Source of the DNA: Salpingoeca rosetta
Taxonomy: Eukaryota > Protista > Choanoflagellata
DNA: 8,286 bases
Direction of reading: 5' to 3'
Assembly: GCA_033442325.1 (NCBI GenBank)
Contig: JAWQFM010000015.1
Location: forward strand, 1,209,160 to 1,217,445
Shown: positions 433 through 8,286 of the stretch, piece after piece
Layout: the number at the start of each line of letters is the position of its first letter
Numbering within the stretch: the first letter of the stretch is position 1
Notes under the pieces: model-generated
Told to the model about the DNA's origin: nothing
What the model saw: only the letters and a program-made list of their open reading frames with translations
Databases searched by the model: none
Made by a program: the position numbers and the translations under genes

Positions 433-715
433 CAACCACAGACAGCCACACTCTGCTTCCGCTCTGCGTCGTCTGTCTGCAACGTTCGTGCTCCTGTGGC
501 TTCCGTGCTCATCACTTCATGTGTAAGGTAACAAAACAACCAGTAAACAGCAACCAAGGCAATGGCAAAGGCCGGGGGGGAGCCGCCAAGCCATGAATAC
601 ATCAGATGAACTGATGATGAAGAAGAGCTGCAACCAAACAACACCAGCAGCAGCATCACCATCATGTAGACGTTTCTCGAATGTTTTCCAACATTATTCC
701 ACAGACACATGCCTG

Positions 716-3700
716 ATGATGATGATGCACAACAAGAAGGCGCACATCAACTGCCGCCAGCTGTTGGCGGTGGCTGTAGTTGTTCTGGTGACACTCTTCC
801 TGTCTGTGCCCTGCTGCGCCGCCGCCGCCACCGCTGCTGCTAAGGATGCGGCGACATCCGAAGCGGTTGTGGAAAATCAGCCTGTCTTGTTTGGGCATGT
901 TGGGCGTGAACAGGCGGCGTGCTCGGACGTGCGTGCTGCCCACCACACACTCACACAACAACTTTCCGCAGCCATGGACGAAGAACTTGCGCACGGCACC
1001 AACGCCTCCGCCAAGCGGCTGCAACACCACTTGCAGGAGGCAGTGGCAACTGCAGCCGCGCTGCAGAAGGCCTTGGACCATCTCTGCCCTTCATCCACGC
1101 CCCTTGTCATCCAAGACACGCACACCAGTCCGCTGCAGCAGCAACAGCAACCGCAGCAGCAATGGCAACAGCAGCAACAGCGACGTGAGCGGCGTAGCGA
1201 CACGAGTGGCGCTCTGTCTTCGCTGCAGGCGACCAACGATAACAGCCTGTTGGATGAGGTGCCTTGTCGGCTGTCAACTCTCATCACCGAGGGTACTTGC
1301 CCACGACCAGTCCACACCCTCCCTCCTGGCTCACCCCTCTCGCTCCTCGTCGACGTGAACATGTTTGTGGACATGACAAACGCCACGCGGGCAAGCGCAG
1401 CTGCTGGACTTTTGCAGCTCTCGCTCACGGTGCGACCACGCACCTTCACCGTGCACGGCGCCAACTTCACCTTGGGCACCTTGTCCTGGGTATTGGAGAA
1501 CGCCAACTGGGAGAGCGTCAGCACCATAAACGTTCGCGGTGTGGTCACCAACCATCTGCACCTCAGCATCTTCAACCCACTCAGCAACGTGACCACCATC
1601 GCTTTCGCCAACAGCACGATCGTCCACCTCTCGCAACGCGGTCCCAACGGCAACACGCACCCGCCCTTGGCTCGCGCCGCCCAGCTGACCCACCTCTTCC
1701 TCAACAACAGTCACATTGAGATTGTGGACCAAGGCACCTTCGCCGGCCTGCAGGCGTTGGAGGTTCTCTCGTTTCACAGTAACCAGCTGACACGTGTGGA
1801 CAGCAGCCTGTTTGGGCATCTCCCCAGCATCCGCTTCCTCGATCTCGCCTTCAACAGCATTACCACAATCGCATCCAGGTCATTCAGAGACCTGACCACG
1901 CTTGAATTCCTGCGACTGCAGGGCAACGACGTGGAACAGCTGCCCGATGACATGTTCGTGGGCCTCTCACGCCTGCGGCAGCTGAACATTGGTGGCCTAC
2001 CACTCACCGAGCTTCACCCGCAACTCTTGGCGCCTTTACGGCAGCTGCGTTCCATCCGCATGCGTTTCCTGCAAGTCACCGCTCTCCCCGCCACCCTCTT
2101 CTCCAACAACCGCTTGCTTGAGACTGTCAACATGGAGCGCGGCCGCGTCCACACCATCCCCGCCAACACGTTCGCAGGCCTCAACAACCTCGACTTTCTC
2201 GAGCTGTCACAGAACAACATCCCCTTCCTTGATGCGGCCTGGTTTGGTGCCGGCGCCCCCAACCTGACGAAGCTGTGGGTCGTGCAGAATGAGCTGACCG
2301 ACATCTCCCCTGAACTCCCGACACTGCTGCCGCGCCTCGACCATCTGAGCCTGCAGCAGAACATGCTCACCAGCATCCCTGCCCAGGTGCTACGCGACCA
2401 GGACAGTCTTCGCATCATCGACATCAGCAACAACAGGCTGCGCTCCCTCCCTGCGGGCAGCTTCGAGCGGCTGCCACGACTTCGCCACATCTCCCTCGCT
2501 AACAACGAGCTCACAGCGCTGCCGTCGTTCCCGCTCCTCCCCGGCCTTCAATCCATCCGCCTCAACCACAACCAGCTCACGCAACTGCCCGACTTGCTGC
2601 AGTTCCCAGCCCTGAGGGAGTTCTACTTCAACAACCACCGCGTGCCACACCTCAACCTCAATGCCGTCGTGGACCTGACGGAGCTGTGGCGCCTGGAGGT
2701 TGCCGCCCACCCAGACATGCCGCCAGCCACGATCAAGGTCGCGCCAACCGTCGGCAACAAGTTGGCAACGCCGCTGCGCGTGCTGGATGTGCGCAATGTG
2801 GACGTGCGTGAGGTTGCGCCCCTCTTCTTCGACAATTCGCGCGTGCACGTGGAGGCGCTGTACGCCGGCTGGCCGGGCATGGATGAGACGACCGTGCGAA
2901 CCGAAGACATTTGCCGCTTCCTGAAGCCGCTTGACACCACGCTGCAGCTGACCAACACCGGGTACAAGCACCTCAACCTGTGCCCGGACCACGTGTTTGA
3001 CGTGCTACTGCTGCAGAACAACCCGGAGTTGGTGAGCCTGCGCGTCACATCGCCCGTGTCGCAGTTCAACGTGTCAGGCTGCACCAACCTGCACGAGCTG
3101 GCGCTGCCAACCGCGGACATTCTCGACATCAGCGGCACGCGCGTGCCCCCCGTGCGCTCGCTGTGTTCCCAGTGGGGTAGCGAGGTGGTGGTGGCGAGGA
3201 ACTGGAAAAGTGACGCCCTCATGAAATCGCGCGAGCGTGTGCGTTCGATGTTGGAACGGTGCTTTGTGTACAGCAACGTGCTGCTGCTTGACCTTAGCGA
3301 CAACGCCTGGCTCGACAAGCCCGAGCTGGTGAAGGACGCCACCCTCGACCTTACCGTCCTCTCGAGCAACGAAGTGCTGACTCAGCAGTTTGTGTCGCTG
3401 GACAGCAGGGCCAACATACCCATTGTGGAGTTGACAGGCACGCCCATCTCGTGCCAGCTCGAGCTCACGCACGTGCGGACGCGGCTGGTCCCAGACATCT
3501 TGCAGCAGGAGTATCGATTGGCGTACTACCACGCCTGCGACTGTGCACGCGGGTATGCCCGCAGCGGCGGCCGTTGCAAGCCCGTGACGCGCGACATCAC
3601 AGCAGCGGTGCTGGGCACGCTGGCGGGCGTGTTTGCGTTCCAGGGCCTCTTGTTTGCTGTGTACTGGACGTACAAGCGGCAGCGACGCCTGCAGACGGAC

Positions 3701-4254
3701 AACGCGCTCAAGGAGAAGCTGCTGGTGGAGCGAGACGCGGAGGTGATGGCGCTGAAGAAGGGGTGGGAGATCGAGTACGGCGAGCTGGAGATGCGGCGGC
3801 ACATCTGCACGGGCGCGTTTGGCGACGTGTGGGAGGGGCGCTGGGACACGGTGCGGGTGGCGGTCAAGGTGATGAAGCAAGAGGTGTTGCTGTTTGACGA
3901 GACGACGATGCAGGAGTTTGAGAAGGAGGTTGAGTTCTTGCAGCGGACACGGCATCCACACCTGGTGCGGTTCTTTGGGGCGGGCACCGATCCCAACGGC
4001 AGCCCGTTCCTTGTGCTGGAGTATGTCGCACTCGGATCGCTGACCGAGCTGTTGGAGAAGGATTTGGGTATTGTGCTTGCAGCGCACAAGCAAGAGAAGC
4101 GCGAGGCGCGCCACCCGTGCGATGATGAGTCATCGTGCATCACCCCATCAACAGCAACTGCGGTGGAGATGACGGCGTGGGACCTGAAGCAGCGGCTGGC
4201 AGGCGACATTGCCTGCGGCATGGCGTTTATCCACTCCCTCGACCAAGTCCACAG
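716..4254 (+). CDS. LRR receptor TKL kinase, exon 1 (signal peptide, LRR ectodomain, TM helix, kinase subdomains I-VIa)
   Basis: ORF open from ATG 593. ATG cluster 716-727 precedes a signal-peptide-like HNKKAHINCRQLLAVAVVVLVTLFLSVPCCAAAA, so the start is uncertain (593 vs 716-725). LRRs at 1685-2683, TM at 3596-3673, CTGAFGDV and VAVK motifs, HPHLVRFFG. Ends at CACAG|GTGTGT within the Arg of HRD. Confidence 0.9.
1136..1180 (+). repeat. CAG/CAA polyglutamine tract (QQQQQPQQQWQQQQQ) in the receptor N-terminal region
   Basis: Read directly in the kinase ORF frame. Confidence 0.9.
1685..2683 (+). other. Leucine-rich repeat array, ~14 consecutive 22-25 aa 'typical'-class LRRs
   Basis: Recurrent LxxLxLxxNxLxxLPxxxFxxL, e.g. 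LRIIDISNNRLRSLPAGSFERLPR and LEFLRLQGNDVEQLPDDMFVGLSR. More degenerate LRR-like strands continue to about 3310. Confidence 0.93.
3596..3673 (+). other. Single transmembrane helix
   Basis: ITAAVLGTLAGVFAFQGLLFAVYWTY followed by the basic stop-transfer sequence KRQRR. Confidence 0.88.
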
Positions 4255-4542
4255 GTGTGTGTGTGTTTGTGTGTGAATGTATGTACGTGAATGTGTATGT
4301 ACGTGCGTGTGCGTGTGTGTATGTGTGCGCGTCCAAACTTTGTGCTCTCAACTGGTGGTTCTTGAATCTCCCACAAGTGAAGTACTCTTGCTCTTGCTCA
4401 CCCGCGACATCATCCTTTCGTTTCAACTCACGACTGATCGCCATCACCCCCCCTCCCTCCCTCTCTCTTTCAATGACACATCCCCCTCCCCCTTCCATGC
4501 GCCTTTCAATATTTCCCTCCCACCCCCTTTTTCCACGTGCAG
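4255..4542 (+). other. GT-AG intron 1 of the receptor kinase (288 nt, phase 2)
   Basis: GTGTGT donor, GT-rich 5' part, pyrimidine-rich 3' part, tgcAG at 4541-4542. The join AG+A GAC CTG AAG gives HRDLKSGN. Confidence 0.93.
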
Positions 4543-5018
4543 AGACCTGAAGAGCGGCAACGTGCTGGTGTCGAGCGCGCTGCGCGGAAAGATCACGGAC
4601 TTTGGGTCCATCCGCGAGCGTCTTCAGCGCCACGACCGCCACAGCAGCACGGCAAGCAGCATGCTGGCCACAGACGACACGCCGTCCATGTTCTCGTCTG
4701 GCTTGGGCCGCATGCGCTCACTGCGGCGGCCCGACTCCCGCGCCGAGATGAAGTACTCACGCGCTGTGGGCGCGAAGACGATGCACCTGAGCATGACGGC
4801 TGGCGTGGGCACGCCCATGTACATGGCACCGGAGGCCCTGTATGGGCGGGAGTATGGGCAGAAGGCAGACGTGTTCAGCTTTGGGGTTGTGCTGTGGGAG
4901 ATTGTGACGCAGCAGCAGCCGGACATTATTGCCCAAGAGTACGGCGACACCTTTGACGGCCCTTTGTTCCCCACCATCAAGCAGCTGCTCGAGGATGGCA
5001 AGCGCCTTCGCTTCCCAG
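4543..5018 (+). CDS. LRR receptor TKL kinase, exon 2 (kinase subdomains VIb-X)
   Basis: DLKSGNVLV, KITDFG, GTPMYMAPE, KADVFSFGVVLWEI. Ends at CCAG|GTGCGT. Confidence 0.92.
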
Positions 5019-5072
5019 GTGCGTGTGTGTTGGGGGGGGGGTGTTGTGTGTGTTGTGTGTTGGTTTTGTGTG

Positions 5073-5103
<31 letters not shown>

Positions 5104-5264
5104 GGTTTTGTGTGTTGTGTGTGTGTGTGTGTGCGTGCGTGTGCGTGCGTGTGTGTGCGTGTGTGTGCGTGTGTGTTGTTTGCGTGTATGCCTCCGTGTG
5201 CGCTCATCCACCCGGTCCCTCTCTCTTACTTCCACCAAACAAAACACATGCGCACACGCCACAG
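5019..5264 (+). other. GT-AG intron 2 of the receptor kinase (246 nt, phase 1), GT-microsatellite rich
   Basis: GTGCGT donor, (GT)n tracts including a ~42-nt-period duplication of ttggttttgtgtgttgtgtgtg, cacAG acceptor at 5263-5264. An alternative in-frame acceptor exists at 5272-5273. Confidence 0.85.
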
Positions 5265-5404
5265 ACGATTCAGAGGCCTCGCCAGGATCGTCGTTGGCGC
5301 CAGCATGGTTCCGTGACATGGCCGTGGCGTGCATGGCGCAAACACCAAAGGACCGTCCCACATTCCAGGAGCTGGAGAAGAAGCTGCGGTACTCAACCAC
5401 TTGA
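5265..5404 (+). CDS. LRR receptor TKL kinase, exon 3 (kinase subdomain XI, stop)
   Basis: DDSEASPGSSLAPAWFRDMAVACMAQTPKDRPTFQELEKKLRYSTT*, with the TKL/TK-type CxxxxPxxRPTF motif and TGA at 5402-5404. Spliced product is 1384 aa from ATG 716. Confidence 0.88.
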
Positions 5405-6814
5405 GGCAGTCCTCACTCACTCGCTTGCTCGCTTGTTCACTTGGTTGCTGGCTGTTATGTTACGGCTTGCCTGGCAACGGCACCGCCCCCTTTTCCCTGC
5501 CACTTGTGCTCGTGATGGTGCGGCACATCTCCAGCACACAATCATGCAGTGTTCCTCCATTCCATTCCATTCCAGTCTAGCTTGACCCGGCCTTCCTGTG
5601 TTGCTTGCTGTACATGAACTTCATCCTTGATTTGCCTTGGTTGTGCGGCGGTCCTCTGGTTGCCGGCAAGCTTGCAATACCACCAACTCTGGTCGGATTC
5701 CGTGATTTGACCCAACAGCTTGCCTCGCTGATTTGGATTGGGAGTCGTCTCGACACGTTTGCCATGCCAAGAAGGGAAGAGAGACGGATGGGGTGAAGCC
5801 ACACAACCACGAACAACCCAACTGACGAATTGCTTCTCTTTGCCAACCTGCCTGTCAGCCTTCCCAACTTGCTGACCAACAATAGAAACGGCCACCACCA
5901 AACAACCCAAACCGCCCAAGAACAAAGGCAAGCGACATGGCAGAGGAAGCAGAGGAAGAAAAAGAACGGCTTGCTCGCTTCCCAGCGGTGCTTGCTGGGC
6001 TTTGTTGTTTTCGTTGTTTTAAATTTCCCGGCAGTTGTTGGTGTCGAAAACTGACCAACGACAGCGATGAAAATTCAAAACCTGACTGTCTTTTTGTGGG
6101 AGCAGACAAGCAAGAGGCACCGACATGATGTGACACCAGCAAGGACCAGACCGCTGCCACACTGAGCCCAACACGCTGACATGCCATGCGACAAACACCA
6201 ACCACGCAGTGAAATGAAACCTTCTTCCTTGGCAATCCCAATCCTGCAACACGGATTGGGTTCAAGTCGACGCCGGGGTGCAACTCGAAACATGCGTTTG
6301 GGGCGTCACCCAACAGCTCCACACCAACCGTTGGATTCTTTGGACGCTGACAAACACAGCAACAACAGCAGCGAGTAGCTGAGTAGTGTTTGCTCCAAAC
6401 AACAACACCCACCACCACAAGCACGTTTTGATGGACGTGGTCCACAACGAAATCCGCCACAACCACAAGACGCACTGAAGCAAGCACCACCACACAACAT
6501 ATCGACCTGTGTTGCCCGTGGAGACAGCCGTCTTCACCAAACAAATCGGGTGTTGAGTTTGGCGATCCGCAACGGAATCCATCATTTTCTTCACCCACCA
6601 CCATCTCAAACACCTCCCACTCACACACCGTACCAGACAGAGAAGGTGCAAGGTGACTGTAAGTGCAGACGATACCGACAGCACGACGACGGAAGCAAGG
6701 AAGCGCTTGCGCGCAAGGATTCCGAACCGAGACAGCACCACAGCGTTCACACCAAGTTCACAACAACTGACAACGCACAACAACGAACATACGCATTCAC
6801 AACAAAGAACAATC

Positions 6815-8286
6815 ATGAACGCACGCTGCTGGCGTTCAGCGGTGATGCTTGTGGCGCTGTGCGCCTTGCTTGCAGGCACAGCCACGGTGCAAGCACAATC
6901 CGACAACACCACCGCAAGTTATGACGAGACCCAGAGCTACTGCAGCCAGTACGAGGGCAACCGCACGGCGTGCGACGCAGACGCGGCGTGCATTGCCTCT
7001 GAGCACTGCGCGACGTGGCTGAGCTACTGCCAGCACAGCAACCAGAGCTCGTGCGAGGCGGAGGACGGATGCGTGTGGGACGCGGCGGGCCACTGCTACA
7101 TCGGGTACCACCCGTGCTACGACATCCAGGACGAGGGCTCGTGCAACACGCAGAGCGAGTGCGAGTGGCACGTGCACTGCAACAACGCGACGGAGTACGG
7201 CGGCCACGGGCCCGACGACTTTGGGCACTCGTACTGCGAGCTTGAGGAGTGCCGTGACATTGTTGAGCAGTGCACGGGCGGGTGCAACGCGACGTTCCAG
7301 TGCATCATCGAGCTCGTGCAGCAGACGGACTGCGAGGACCCGGACGTGTGCATTGACATGTGCCGCAACACGACGACGCGGACTGCGCAGGAGGAGGCCG
7401 TGTTTGAGGAGCTGGTCACGTGCGAGAAGCGGTGCTACGCGACGCGGGACTGCCGGAAGCGGGACGTTGCGTCGTGCGAGTACGAGGCGGAGTGCAGCGT
7501 GAACCGGTACTGCTTCCCACAGGATGATTACACGCTGTGCCAGGGCAACAGCTCGGCGAGCTGCCTCGGCGAGAGCAACTGCGAGTGGAACTGGAACACC
7601 AGCACGTGCTACCTGAGCAGCCACGCGTGCTTCGGCTACGGCGACTCTGCGAGCTGCGACGGCGCTGCTGAGGGCTGCGTGTGGAAGGAGGAGTGCGACC
7701 TTTCGCCGTACTACCCGAACGTGAACGGCACGGACGACGGCAGCTACTACAACGGCACCGGGGATGGCAGCTACTACAACGGCACCGGGGACGGCACAGC
7801 ACCGTACTATGGGGAGTCGTCGTACTGCAGCCAGTACGAGGGCAACCGCACGGCGTGCGACGCAGACGCGGCGTGCATTGCCTCTGAGCACTGCGCGACG
7901 TGGCTGAGCTACTGCCAGCACAGCAACCAGAGCTCGTGCGAGGCGGAGGACGGATGCGTGTGGGACGCGGCGGGCCACTGCTACATCGGGTACCACCCGT
8001 GCTACGACATCCAGGACGAGGGCTCGTGCAACACGCAGAGCGAGTGCGAGTGGCACGTGCACTGCAACAACGCGACGGAGTACGGCGGCCACGGGCCCGA
8101 CGACTTTGGGCACTCGTACTGCGAGCTTGAGGAGTGCCGTGACATTGTTGAGCAGTGCACGGGCGGGTGCAACGCGACGTTCCAGTGCATCATCGAGCTC
8201 GTGCAGCAGACGGACTGCGAGGACCCGGACGTGTGCATTGACATGTGCACGCAACACGACAACGCGGACTGCGCAGGAGGAGGCCG
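6815..8286 (+). CDS. Secreted/surface Cys-rich tandem-repeat glycoprotein, 5' part (runs off the window; not in the ORF track)
   Basis: First in-frame ATG after TGA 6554-6556. MNARCWRSAVMLVALCALLAGTATVQA-QSDNTT is a typical signal peptide. The frame has no stop to the window end, strong G/C third positions, regularly spaced Cys and many NxS/T sequons. There is a +1 insertion at 8249 relative to the first repeat copy. Confidence 0.88.
   Translation, partial: MNARCWRSAVMLVALCALLAGTATVQAQSDNTTASYDETQSYCSQYEGNRTACDADAACIASEHCATWLSYCQHSNQSSCEAEDGCVWDAAGHCYIGYHPCYDIQDEGSCNTQSECEWHVHCNNATEYGGHGPDDFGHSYCELEECRDIVEQCTGGCNATFQCIIELVQQTDCEDPDVCIDMCRNTTTRTAQEEAVFEELVTCEKRCYATRDCRKRDVASCEYEAECSVNRYCFPQDDYTLCQGNSSASCLGESNCEWNWNTSTCYLSSHACFGYGDSASCDGAAEGCVWKEECDLSPYYPNVNGTDDGSYYNGTGDGSYYNGTGDGTAPYYGESSYCSQYEGNRTACDADAACIASEHCATWLSYCQHSNQSSCEAEDGCVWDAAGHCYIGYHPCYDIQDEGSCNTQSECEWHVHCNNATEYGGHGPDDFGHSYCELEECRDIVEQCTGGCNATFQCIIELVQQTDCEDPDVCIDMCTQHDNADCAGGG
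6938..8286 (+). repeat. 885-bp in-frame tandem repeat: copy 1 at 6938-7822, copy 2 from 7823 past the window end
   Basis: 6938-7363 and 7823-8248 are identical on base-by-base reading. Copy 2 then shows one inserted A (8249) and one G>A change (8261). 885/3 = 295 aa. Confidence 0.96.
7724..7796 (+). repeat. 27-bp minisatellite encoding GSYYNGTGD (two full copies plus partial flanks)
   Basis: ggcagctactacaacggcaccgggga(t/c) at 7739-7765 and 7766-7792, preceded by aacggcacggacgac. Confidence 0.93.

Follow-up and report, generated by a model that had tools for sequence, protein, structure and literature searches.

A cysteine-rich repeat region of Salpingoeca rosetta as the probable outer ectodomain of a large membrane tyrosinase

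Extended ectodomains made of tandem small glycosylated modules with two disulfides each are known from EGF arrays, TNFR-type Cys-rich domains and the C-terminal domain of VSG, and tyrosinases occur together with Tyr/Gly-rich stretches in the quinone-tanning systems of mussel byssus and of trematode eggshell precursors. In a survey published in 2013, no type-3 copper protein turned up in M. brevicollis, a choanoflagellate, and membrane-bound forms were taken to be animal-only (PMC3658974). Here, we describe an open reading frame (ORF) of the choanoflagellate Salpingoeca rosetta that begins at position 6815 of an 8,286-nucleotide (nt) stretch of JAWQFM010000015.1 (C15:1209160-1217445, hereafter the window, in which positions are counted from its first letter) and encodes a hierarchical repeat of Cys-rich modules. 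The best explanation overall, to which we assign a probability of roughly 0.7, is that a giant type-I membrane tyrosinase begins here, with its signal peptide and the outermost part of its ectodomain, the latter as a stalk in the coat or theca.

As we read it, the gene, known publicly as PTSG_12389, resembles the tanning systems in that protease inhibitors are present and that it is expressed while a secreted attachment structure, the theca, is built. It differs from them because enzyme, inhibitors and putative substrate would lie in one membrane-anchored polypeptide and because its Tyr-rich linker is specific to this gene. The likeness to the EGF, TNFR-type and VSG arrays lies in the general build, whereas none of them matches the unit significantly in sequence or fold. 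The gene is already known as a hypothetical protein, and its kind, a modular Cys-rich ectodomain stalk with PSI-like modules, is not categorically new. What is new here is a 3 + 1 + 3 unit of two module types, which is without a match in the domain and structure libraries; the confinement of the modules to a handful of choanoflagellate proteins, together with their link to expression in thecate cells; and a perfect tandem amplification that explains a gap in the assembly.

The gene model and its relatives

A unit profile, made from the window and three paralogous pieces of S. rosetta, was scored against 1.84 billion representative proteins, 20 of which matched at E ≤ 0.001. One of these, P0003 (937 amino acids, aa), starts with exactly the 6815 ORF and is S. 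rosetta PTSG_12389 (EGD74691.1, XP_004992948.1, UniProt F2UDJ6), named in the sources either as a hypothetical protein or as 'BPTI/Kunitz inhibitor domain-containing protein'. The ORF at 6815 is exon 1 of this model, and the description of the locus as unannotated in the original prediction was wrong. A full-text literature search for the PTSG identifiers found no paper, and the genes are not listed in the mSphere 2025 supplement.

The matches of the choanoflagellate tyrosinase family to the unit ranged from E 1e-17 to 1e-144, with Cys invariant across the 13 aligned sequences, and the S. rosetta paralogues PTSG_06042, PTSG_12385 and PTSG_09048 were among the strongest. Full-length orthologues were found in Hartaetosiga balthica (EP00055_P016931, 2808 aa) and S. 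urceolata (EP00051_P017573, 2386 aa), and two further environmental transcripts of 2780 and 2416 aa have the same architecture. In this family the signal peptide is followed by the Cys units, TIG/IPT repeats, a further helical Cys module and a Kunitz domain, and then by Gly-Tyr-Asp repeats, a knot resembling FnI or VWC, the tyrosinase domain, Kazal-like modules, an SEA-like region, a transmembrane helix and a tail. Pfam confirmed TIG/IPT, Kunitz and tyrosinase in four full-length relatives and Kazal in one of the four; the other parts were read from the sequence. TIG_plexin follows the units in S. urceolata (E 3.2e-14) and TIG follows them in PTSG_06042; this neighbourhood was seen in the relatives, and the corresponding region of the 6815 locus falls in a gap. 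All members are uncharacterised. PTSG_12389 shares with them the 3 + 1 + 3 unit and its invariant Cys, and it differs in that the unit and a Tyr-rich linker are tandemly amplified with identical DNA copies and that the assembly lacks the central part of the gene.

Within its scaffold the window is a single contig, with runs of N on both sides that we read as ordinary scaffold gaps, and the run directly to its right is 12,458 N long (C15:1217446-1229903). The PTSG_12389 model splices from a GT donor near the window end over this gap into the Kunitz domain, so that in P0003 the residues encoded up to 8230 are joined directly to residues encoded at least 27 nt past the gap, and the junction halves both a helical module and the Kunitz domain, which Pfam does not see in P0003. 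The model is too short, with 937 aa against 2386-2808 aa in the orthologues. It ends just before a second gap of 100 N, beyond which homology continues in the same frame, and the next model, PTSG_12390, carries a Kazal annotation. Because homology runs past the end of the model and PTSG_12390 has the Kazal annotation, PTSG_12389 and PTSG_12390 are best taken to be parts of a single gene that spans about 17.7 kb with its two gaps.

The sequence directly past the 12,458-N gap lies on the same strand and runs from the middle of a Kunitz domain through Gly-Tyr-Asp repeats to a tyrosinase domain, and it opens there without a start codon or a signal peptide of its own. Past the 100-N gap it continues in the same frame with two Kazal-like modules, an SEA-like stretch with a run of four Arg that forms a basic cleavage-type site, a single transmembrane helix and, last, a tail some 100 residues long. 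The Kazal-like modules were read by eye at this locus, and Pfam support for Kazal was obtained only in the orthologue P0006. On this strand downstream of the gap, homology extends over residues 1229-2334 of P0006, and the in-frame continuation to the transmembrane helix and tail was observed within C15:1229906-1233724. The original prediction had asked whether the 3′ end would hold a transmembrane segment, a GPI anchor or a kinase; it is the helix with its tail, in which no kinase or other known signalling domain was found.

The reading of one gene is drawn from the colinearity of the full-length orthologues and an ungapped paralogue. The ungapped locus, C15:1160160-1168407 on the minus strand, is colinear with P0006 from residue 1 to about residue 2376. 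In addition, a paralogue on C26 has a signal peptide, small modules, a helical-type module, Kunitz, tyrosinase, Kazal-like modules and a transmembrane helix. We therefore consider it very probable that the 6815 ORF is the N-terminus of the tyrosinase gene. The original prediction of a large disulfide-rich matrix, coat or adhesion glycoprotein holds for an acidic, sequon-rich extracellular region, and fails in that this is most likely the N-terminus of a membrane tyrosinase and not a separate protein.

S. rosetta has six large tyrosinase-domain loci (C7:249296, C7:265478, C26:459123, C15:1162656, C15:1230749 and C21:1252860), and by sequence its tyrosinase domain stands nearest to the hemocyanin units of molluscs and to tyrosinases of bacteria rather than to TYRP1.

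The 295-residue unit and its duplication

The plus-strand frame is open from the ATG at 6815 to the window end (490 aa); upstream, the nearest in-frame stop lies at 6554, and the next ATG is the one at 6815. The GC content at third codon positions (GC3) is 0.894 in this frame, which supports coding on the plus strand. An antisense ORF of 473 aa was rejected as a gene, as its mirror codon composition (GC content at first positions, GC1, 0.90) marks it as an artefact. From their build and hydropathy, the first 27 residues read as a signal peptide, with a charged basic n-region, a hydrophobic core of 13 residues (11-residue Kyte-Doolittle mean up to 3.0) and the cleavage-type motif V-Q-A. The N-terminus is identical to that of PTSG_12389, and the paralogues and orthologues likewise begin with hydrophobic leaders.

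The first repeat unit contains 34 Cys, 10 N-x-S/T sequons and 52 Asp and Glu against 12 Lys and Arg, with an isoelectric point of 4.09. Three modules of four Cys are followed by a Gly/His/Asp linker, a module of 10 Cys, another three modules of four Cys and a Tyr/Gly/Asn linker (Table 1); a 27-nt tandem repeat lies inside the latter linker at 7724-7796. The secreted Cys-rich ORF with its hierarchical 295-aa repeat, the order of modules and linkers, the 10 sequons per unit and the strong acidity had all been predicted originally and were borne out. The small modules are 23-26 residues long, with four Cys that are invariant across 19 aligned modules and a Trp two residues past the third Cys in most of these. 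The C-x-W core, which had been given originally as part of a rough pattern of the small modules, is present in only four of the six of unit 1, while the pattern of four Cys holds throughout. In the 10-Cys module, eight of the ten Cys are invariant among 13 aligned sequences. The units of the paralogues PTSG_06042 and PTSG_12385, of the H. balthica and S. urceolata orthologues and of environmental proteins can be aligned with unit 1; the environmental transcripts entered the alignment as whole proteins.

Table 1. Features of the ORF at 6815 (positions in the window)
Feature	Position	Strand	Basis or detail
ATG and N-terminus of signal-peptide type (27 residues, V-Q-A at its end)	6815..6895	+	First ATG, hydropathy, PTSG_12389 identity
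Short leader from cleavage-type site to first repeat unit, one sequon	6896..6937	+	DNA identity with copy 2 starts only at 6938
Repeat unit 1, 885 nt / 295 aa	6938..7822	+	DNA self-comparison, composition
First triplet of 4-Cys 'mini-PSI-like' modules	6938..7183	+	Members 6938-7012, 7025-7099, 7112-7183
Gly/His/Asp linker	7184..7225	+	Sequence
10-Cys all-helical module	7226..7444	+	Cys alignment and AlphaFold2 model
Second triplet of 4-Cys modules	7448..7699	+	Members 7448-7516, 7535-7612, 7625-7699
Tyr/Gly/Asn linker	7700..7822	+	8 Tyr in 42 residues, three N-G-T sequons
Repeat unit 2, truncated at the contig edge	7823..8286	+	Identical to unit 1 up to 8248
'Intron' start of the PTSG_12389 model	8231..8286	+	Exon 1 ends 8230; GT donor 8231
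1-nt insertion (A at 8249) and G>A change (8261) against unit 1	8249..8261	+	Copy alignment

The second copy is 100% identical to the first over 426 nt of DNA, after which an insertion of one nucleotide and one substitution follow at 38 and 26 nt, respectively, from the contig end. By the insertion, the last 13 residues translated in the original prediction are out of frame relative to copy 1; if the rest of copy 2 were like copy 1, this frame would meet a stop after 13 codons. Because the position adjoins the scaffold gap, the insertion suggests a low-quality contig end as its likely source. A whole-unit tandem duplication is also found in PTSG_06042 (C15:1136000-1145999, minus strand), where two copies at an offset of 986 nt agree in 686 of 690 nt and a partial third one is present. 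As this one lies in ungapped sequence, it argues that the duplication at the 6815 locus is real. The amplification of the 885-nt unit together with its linker, in copies of identical DNA, would account for the break of the assembly at the contig end. That both genes carry such a duplication points to repeated amplification or to gene conversion within the family.

On the left, the window is directly preceded by 1,100 N (C15:1208060-1209159), and its positions 1-102 are a (CA)51 repeat abutting this gap. At 593-5404 on the plus strand lies a gene with a leucine-rich repeat (LRR) ectodomain (LRR_8, E 3e-47), together with a protein kinase domain split across two open frames, and this LRR receptor kinase gene adjoins the tyrosinase gene.

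Module folds and the PSI domain

An AlphaFold2 model of the unit, calculated from the alignment of 13 sequences, had a mean predicted local distance difference test score (pLDDT) of 83.5, whereas a model from four sequences only (52.9) was too poor to use. Each small module was modelled as a short helix and a beta-hairpin (pLDDT about 78-88) and the 10-Cys module as a bundle of five helices (80-92); the only stretch below 50 was residues 86-95, in the Gly/His/Asp linker.

The absence of an assignable known family, already stated in the original prediction, was upheld by the following searches. Pfam gave only a noise match in the 490 aa and no PSI at E ≤ 1. A word-based protein search with the 490 aa returned no match among proteins of 270-857 aa, an outcome explained by its length filter. 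In the ESM Atlas, the whole piece and the helical module were blank or below the usable score (0.82 to a bacterial cluster for the helical module). Searches of PDB sequences gave nothing significant with the unit and nothing at E ≤ 10 with the 10-Cys profile, and the only match of the small-module profile was the VSG C-terminal domain at E 1.3. When the unit model, in which the small modules were covered as parts of the whole, was compared with the PDB by Foldseek, only generic helical matches and nothing at E ≤ 0.001 were obtained, and the best Z in an exhaustive VIA fold search was 5.4, to unrelated helical proteins and below the chance level for helical models. The Frizzled CRD, the GDNF-receptor/GAS1 domain and the RECK N-terminal motifs gave no profile or fold match to the 10-Cys module in Pfam, PDB, Foldseek, VIA or the Atlas. 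These results support the view that the two module types belong to no described family. A likeness of the repeats to ciliate surface antigens, also proposed originally, was not found: the sole such match is the trypanosome VSG one, and no ciliate-named protein is among the 20 unit matches, a search that was not specific to ciliate proteomes.

The PSI domain (PF01437) has about 50 residues and eight Cys, with disulfides 1-4, 2-8, 3-6 and 5-7 in the Sema4D and integrin structures. The small modules resemble it in having a short helix and then a hairpin with C-x-W, and in their TIG/IPT neighbours in the orthologues, but with about 25 residues and four Cys they lack its second half and its Cys 2 and 5. 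When the 19 small modules were aligned by hhalign with eight PSI domains of S. rosetta, a probability of 37% was obtained (E 3.5e-4, 19 columns), and the register placed Cys 1, 2 and 3 of the module on Cys 1, 3 and 4 of PSI, with the C-x-W shared. On this register, which is hypothetical, a module that keeps Cys 1, 3, 4 and 6 of PSI would retain two full disulfides and lose the C-terminal half. The small module resembles the first half of a PSI domain, probably with two of the four PSI disulfides kept, and in each knob the pairs 1-3 and 2-4 would be predicted. The paralogue PTSG_12385 was labelled PSI by InterPro in the 2013 annotation. The PSI gathering cut-off of 23.1 bits was not reached, the best score in a paralogue piece being 14.6 bits (E 0.042). 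The modules are PSI-like and are not classed as PSI, because Pfam PSI fails and hhalign gives 37%, while the TIG_plexin context and the label of PTSG_12385 agree with the likeness. In this sense the resemblance to PSI that had been noted from the letters is weakly supported, although the Pfam PSI model does not score the modules.

The 10-Cys module was found 1-10 times per protein and only in choanoflagellate-type matches. Arrays of a similar 4-Cys C-x-W module were observed in apparently bacterial proteins (P0013, P0014, P0016 and P0019) and in apparently eukaryotic, non-choanoflagellate ones (P0015, P0017 and P0020). Their matches to the unit are weak (E 1e-4 to 1e-6), some of the proteins have a hydrophobic leader, and none was given a Pfam family name; the P0013 cluster includes a protein from an Oligoflexales genome bin. 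In S. rosetta, genes at C36:175400-178588 (plus strand) and on C26 encode a signal peptide and then two or three small modules, each with a GT-rich intron interruption. The small-module cassette seems to be a reusable N-terminal element.

Expression, proposed role and alternatives

In the data of Fairclough et al. 2013 (PMC4054682), PTSG_12389 reached 22.7, 189.5 and 151.6 fragments per kilobase of transcript per million mapped reads (FPKM) in the attached (thecate) samples, compared with 35.3 in swimmers, 1.5, 6.3 and 5.3 in rosettes and 0.49 in chains, values that refer to whole gene models and not to the 6815 exon alone. The log2 ratio of attached to colony was 5.5 (P = 7.8e-24), or about 45-fold, and PTSG_06042, PTSG_12385 and PTSG_12390 showed the same attached-cell pattern (PMC4054682). 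The same list is topped by collagen, VWA, prolyl 4-hydroxylase and dual-oxidase/peroxidase genes, and thecate cells were reported to upregulate choanoflagellate-specific genes preferentially (PMC4054682). The caption of Additional file 11 of that paper reads 'upregulated in colonial cells'; the header (log2Fold Attach/Colony) and the sort order identify the file as the attached list, and the captions seem to have been swapped.

The N-terminal region is a chain of independently folded, disulfide-stapled modules arranged 3 + 1 + 3. We propose that the array would form a stiff, acidic and heavily glycosylated distal stalk or scaffold of a surface protein, by which enzyme and inhibitors may be held or embedded in the coat or theca that the cell secretes. 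In this scheme Tyr or phenols would be the substrates of the tyrosinase, the Kunitz and Kazal modules may serve to protect the matrix, and shedding may take place at the basic site close to the membrane. The tyrosinase may also use the Tyr-rich linkers that separate the units for cross-linking; this idea is weak, because the linker is specific to PTSG_12389. A structural or cross-linking job of the array in theca or coat is suggested tentatively, at a little below even odds. A bolder version is speculative and to our mind doubtful. In it the half-PSI 4-Cys knob and the 10-Cys bundle are two undescribed families that make up the distal scaffold of a system peculiar to choanoflagellates and their thecate cells, the membrane tyrosinase tans its own amplified, Tyr-studded stalk, or the surrounding theca, to a hard structure for attachment, and the gap would hide on the order of ten more perfect units of a hypervariable array.

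Several observations weigh against the stalk of a membrane tyrosinase as we read it. The gap of 12,458 N hides any continuous sequence or transcript from the exon to the tyrosinase, all searches having used single exons or public proteins with nothing read across it, and in the public model it is spanned by an intron that leaves two domains split. As assembled, the frame of copy 2 shifts at 8249, with an early stop expected. The structural model rests on 13 sequences, and disulfide pairs cannot be read from it. The link to PSI is weak in the profile alignment given above, and a six-frame scan of the genome with PF01437 found 22 PSI sites, none of them at the 6815 locus or its paralogues. The Tyr-rich linker is absent after the unit in PTSG_06042 and so is not conserved in paralogues; the expression values belong to whole gene models; and the structural or cross-linking role is drawn from composition, neighbouring domains and cell-type expression.

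The frame shift and the gap would also fit an ORF that encodes a stand-alone secreted Cys-rich glycoprotein whose gene ends near the window, with a separate Kunitz-tyrosinase gene behind it: the stop would come 13 codons after the insertion if copy 2 is like copy 1, 12.4 kb of gap could hold a gene boundary, and small secreted proteins consisting of modules only do exist (P0009, P0012 and the C36 locus). We regard this as very unlikely, since the insertion lies only 38 nt from the contig end beside a gap, the part after the gap begins mid-Kunitz and lacks a start codon and a signal peptide, units and tyrosinase are in one ORF in every full-length relative including the ungapped S. rosetta paralogue, and PTSG_12389 and PTSG_12390 are alike in their expression patterns. 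The identity of the copies over 426 nt and the end of the second one at the contig edge could likewise be taken to mean that the tandem duplication is an artefact of assembly and that the real gene has a single unit. This is highly improbable, because within one contig copy 1 passes in frame through a unique linker into copy 2, the 12.4-kb gap directly after it is expected of an unresolved array, and PTSG_06042 shows a like duplication inside ungapped sequence.

The gene may also be as we propose and the array a ligand-sensing receptor ectodomain, with a PSI-IPT layout like that of plexin or MET and signalling through the tail. Choanoflagellates have elaborate phosphotyrosine signalling. This role has to be considered because PSI-like knobs are followed by TIG_plexin/IPT in the orthologues and because the tails of P0005, P0008 and P0018 are dense in Tyr motifs (N-P-x-Y-like and Y-x-x-P), and the LRR receptor kinase gene lies immediately upstream. 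Taken by themselves, the Tyr motifs in these three tails hint at phosphotyrosine signalling or endocytic sorting. We consider the receptor role unlikely, if a serious alternative, as the tail at this locus has no kinase or other known signalling domain, perfect amplification of a whole unit would be more typical of stalk, mucin and coat proteins than of ligand-binding sites, and the enzyme and inhibitor domains and the co-expression with collagen, VWA and peroxidase genes point to work in the matrix.

In practical terms, the public models PTSG_12389 and PTSG_12390 are fragmentary, and the locus needs long reads. The thecate cell is the attached life stage of the best-studied choanoflagellate model, and the tyrosinase family, which combines an oxidising enzyme, protease inhibitors and a disulfide-rich stalk in one protein, is a concrete candidate for building or hardening the theca. 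Since the two module types are absent from domain databases, they are invisible to the standard annotation of holozoan surface proteins. The occurrence of a half-PSI module beside a plexin-type TIG bears on the origin of the PSI-IPT stalks of animal receptors.

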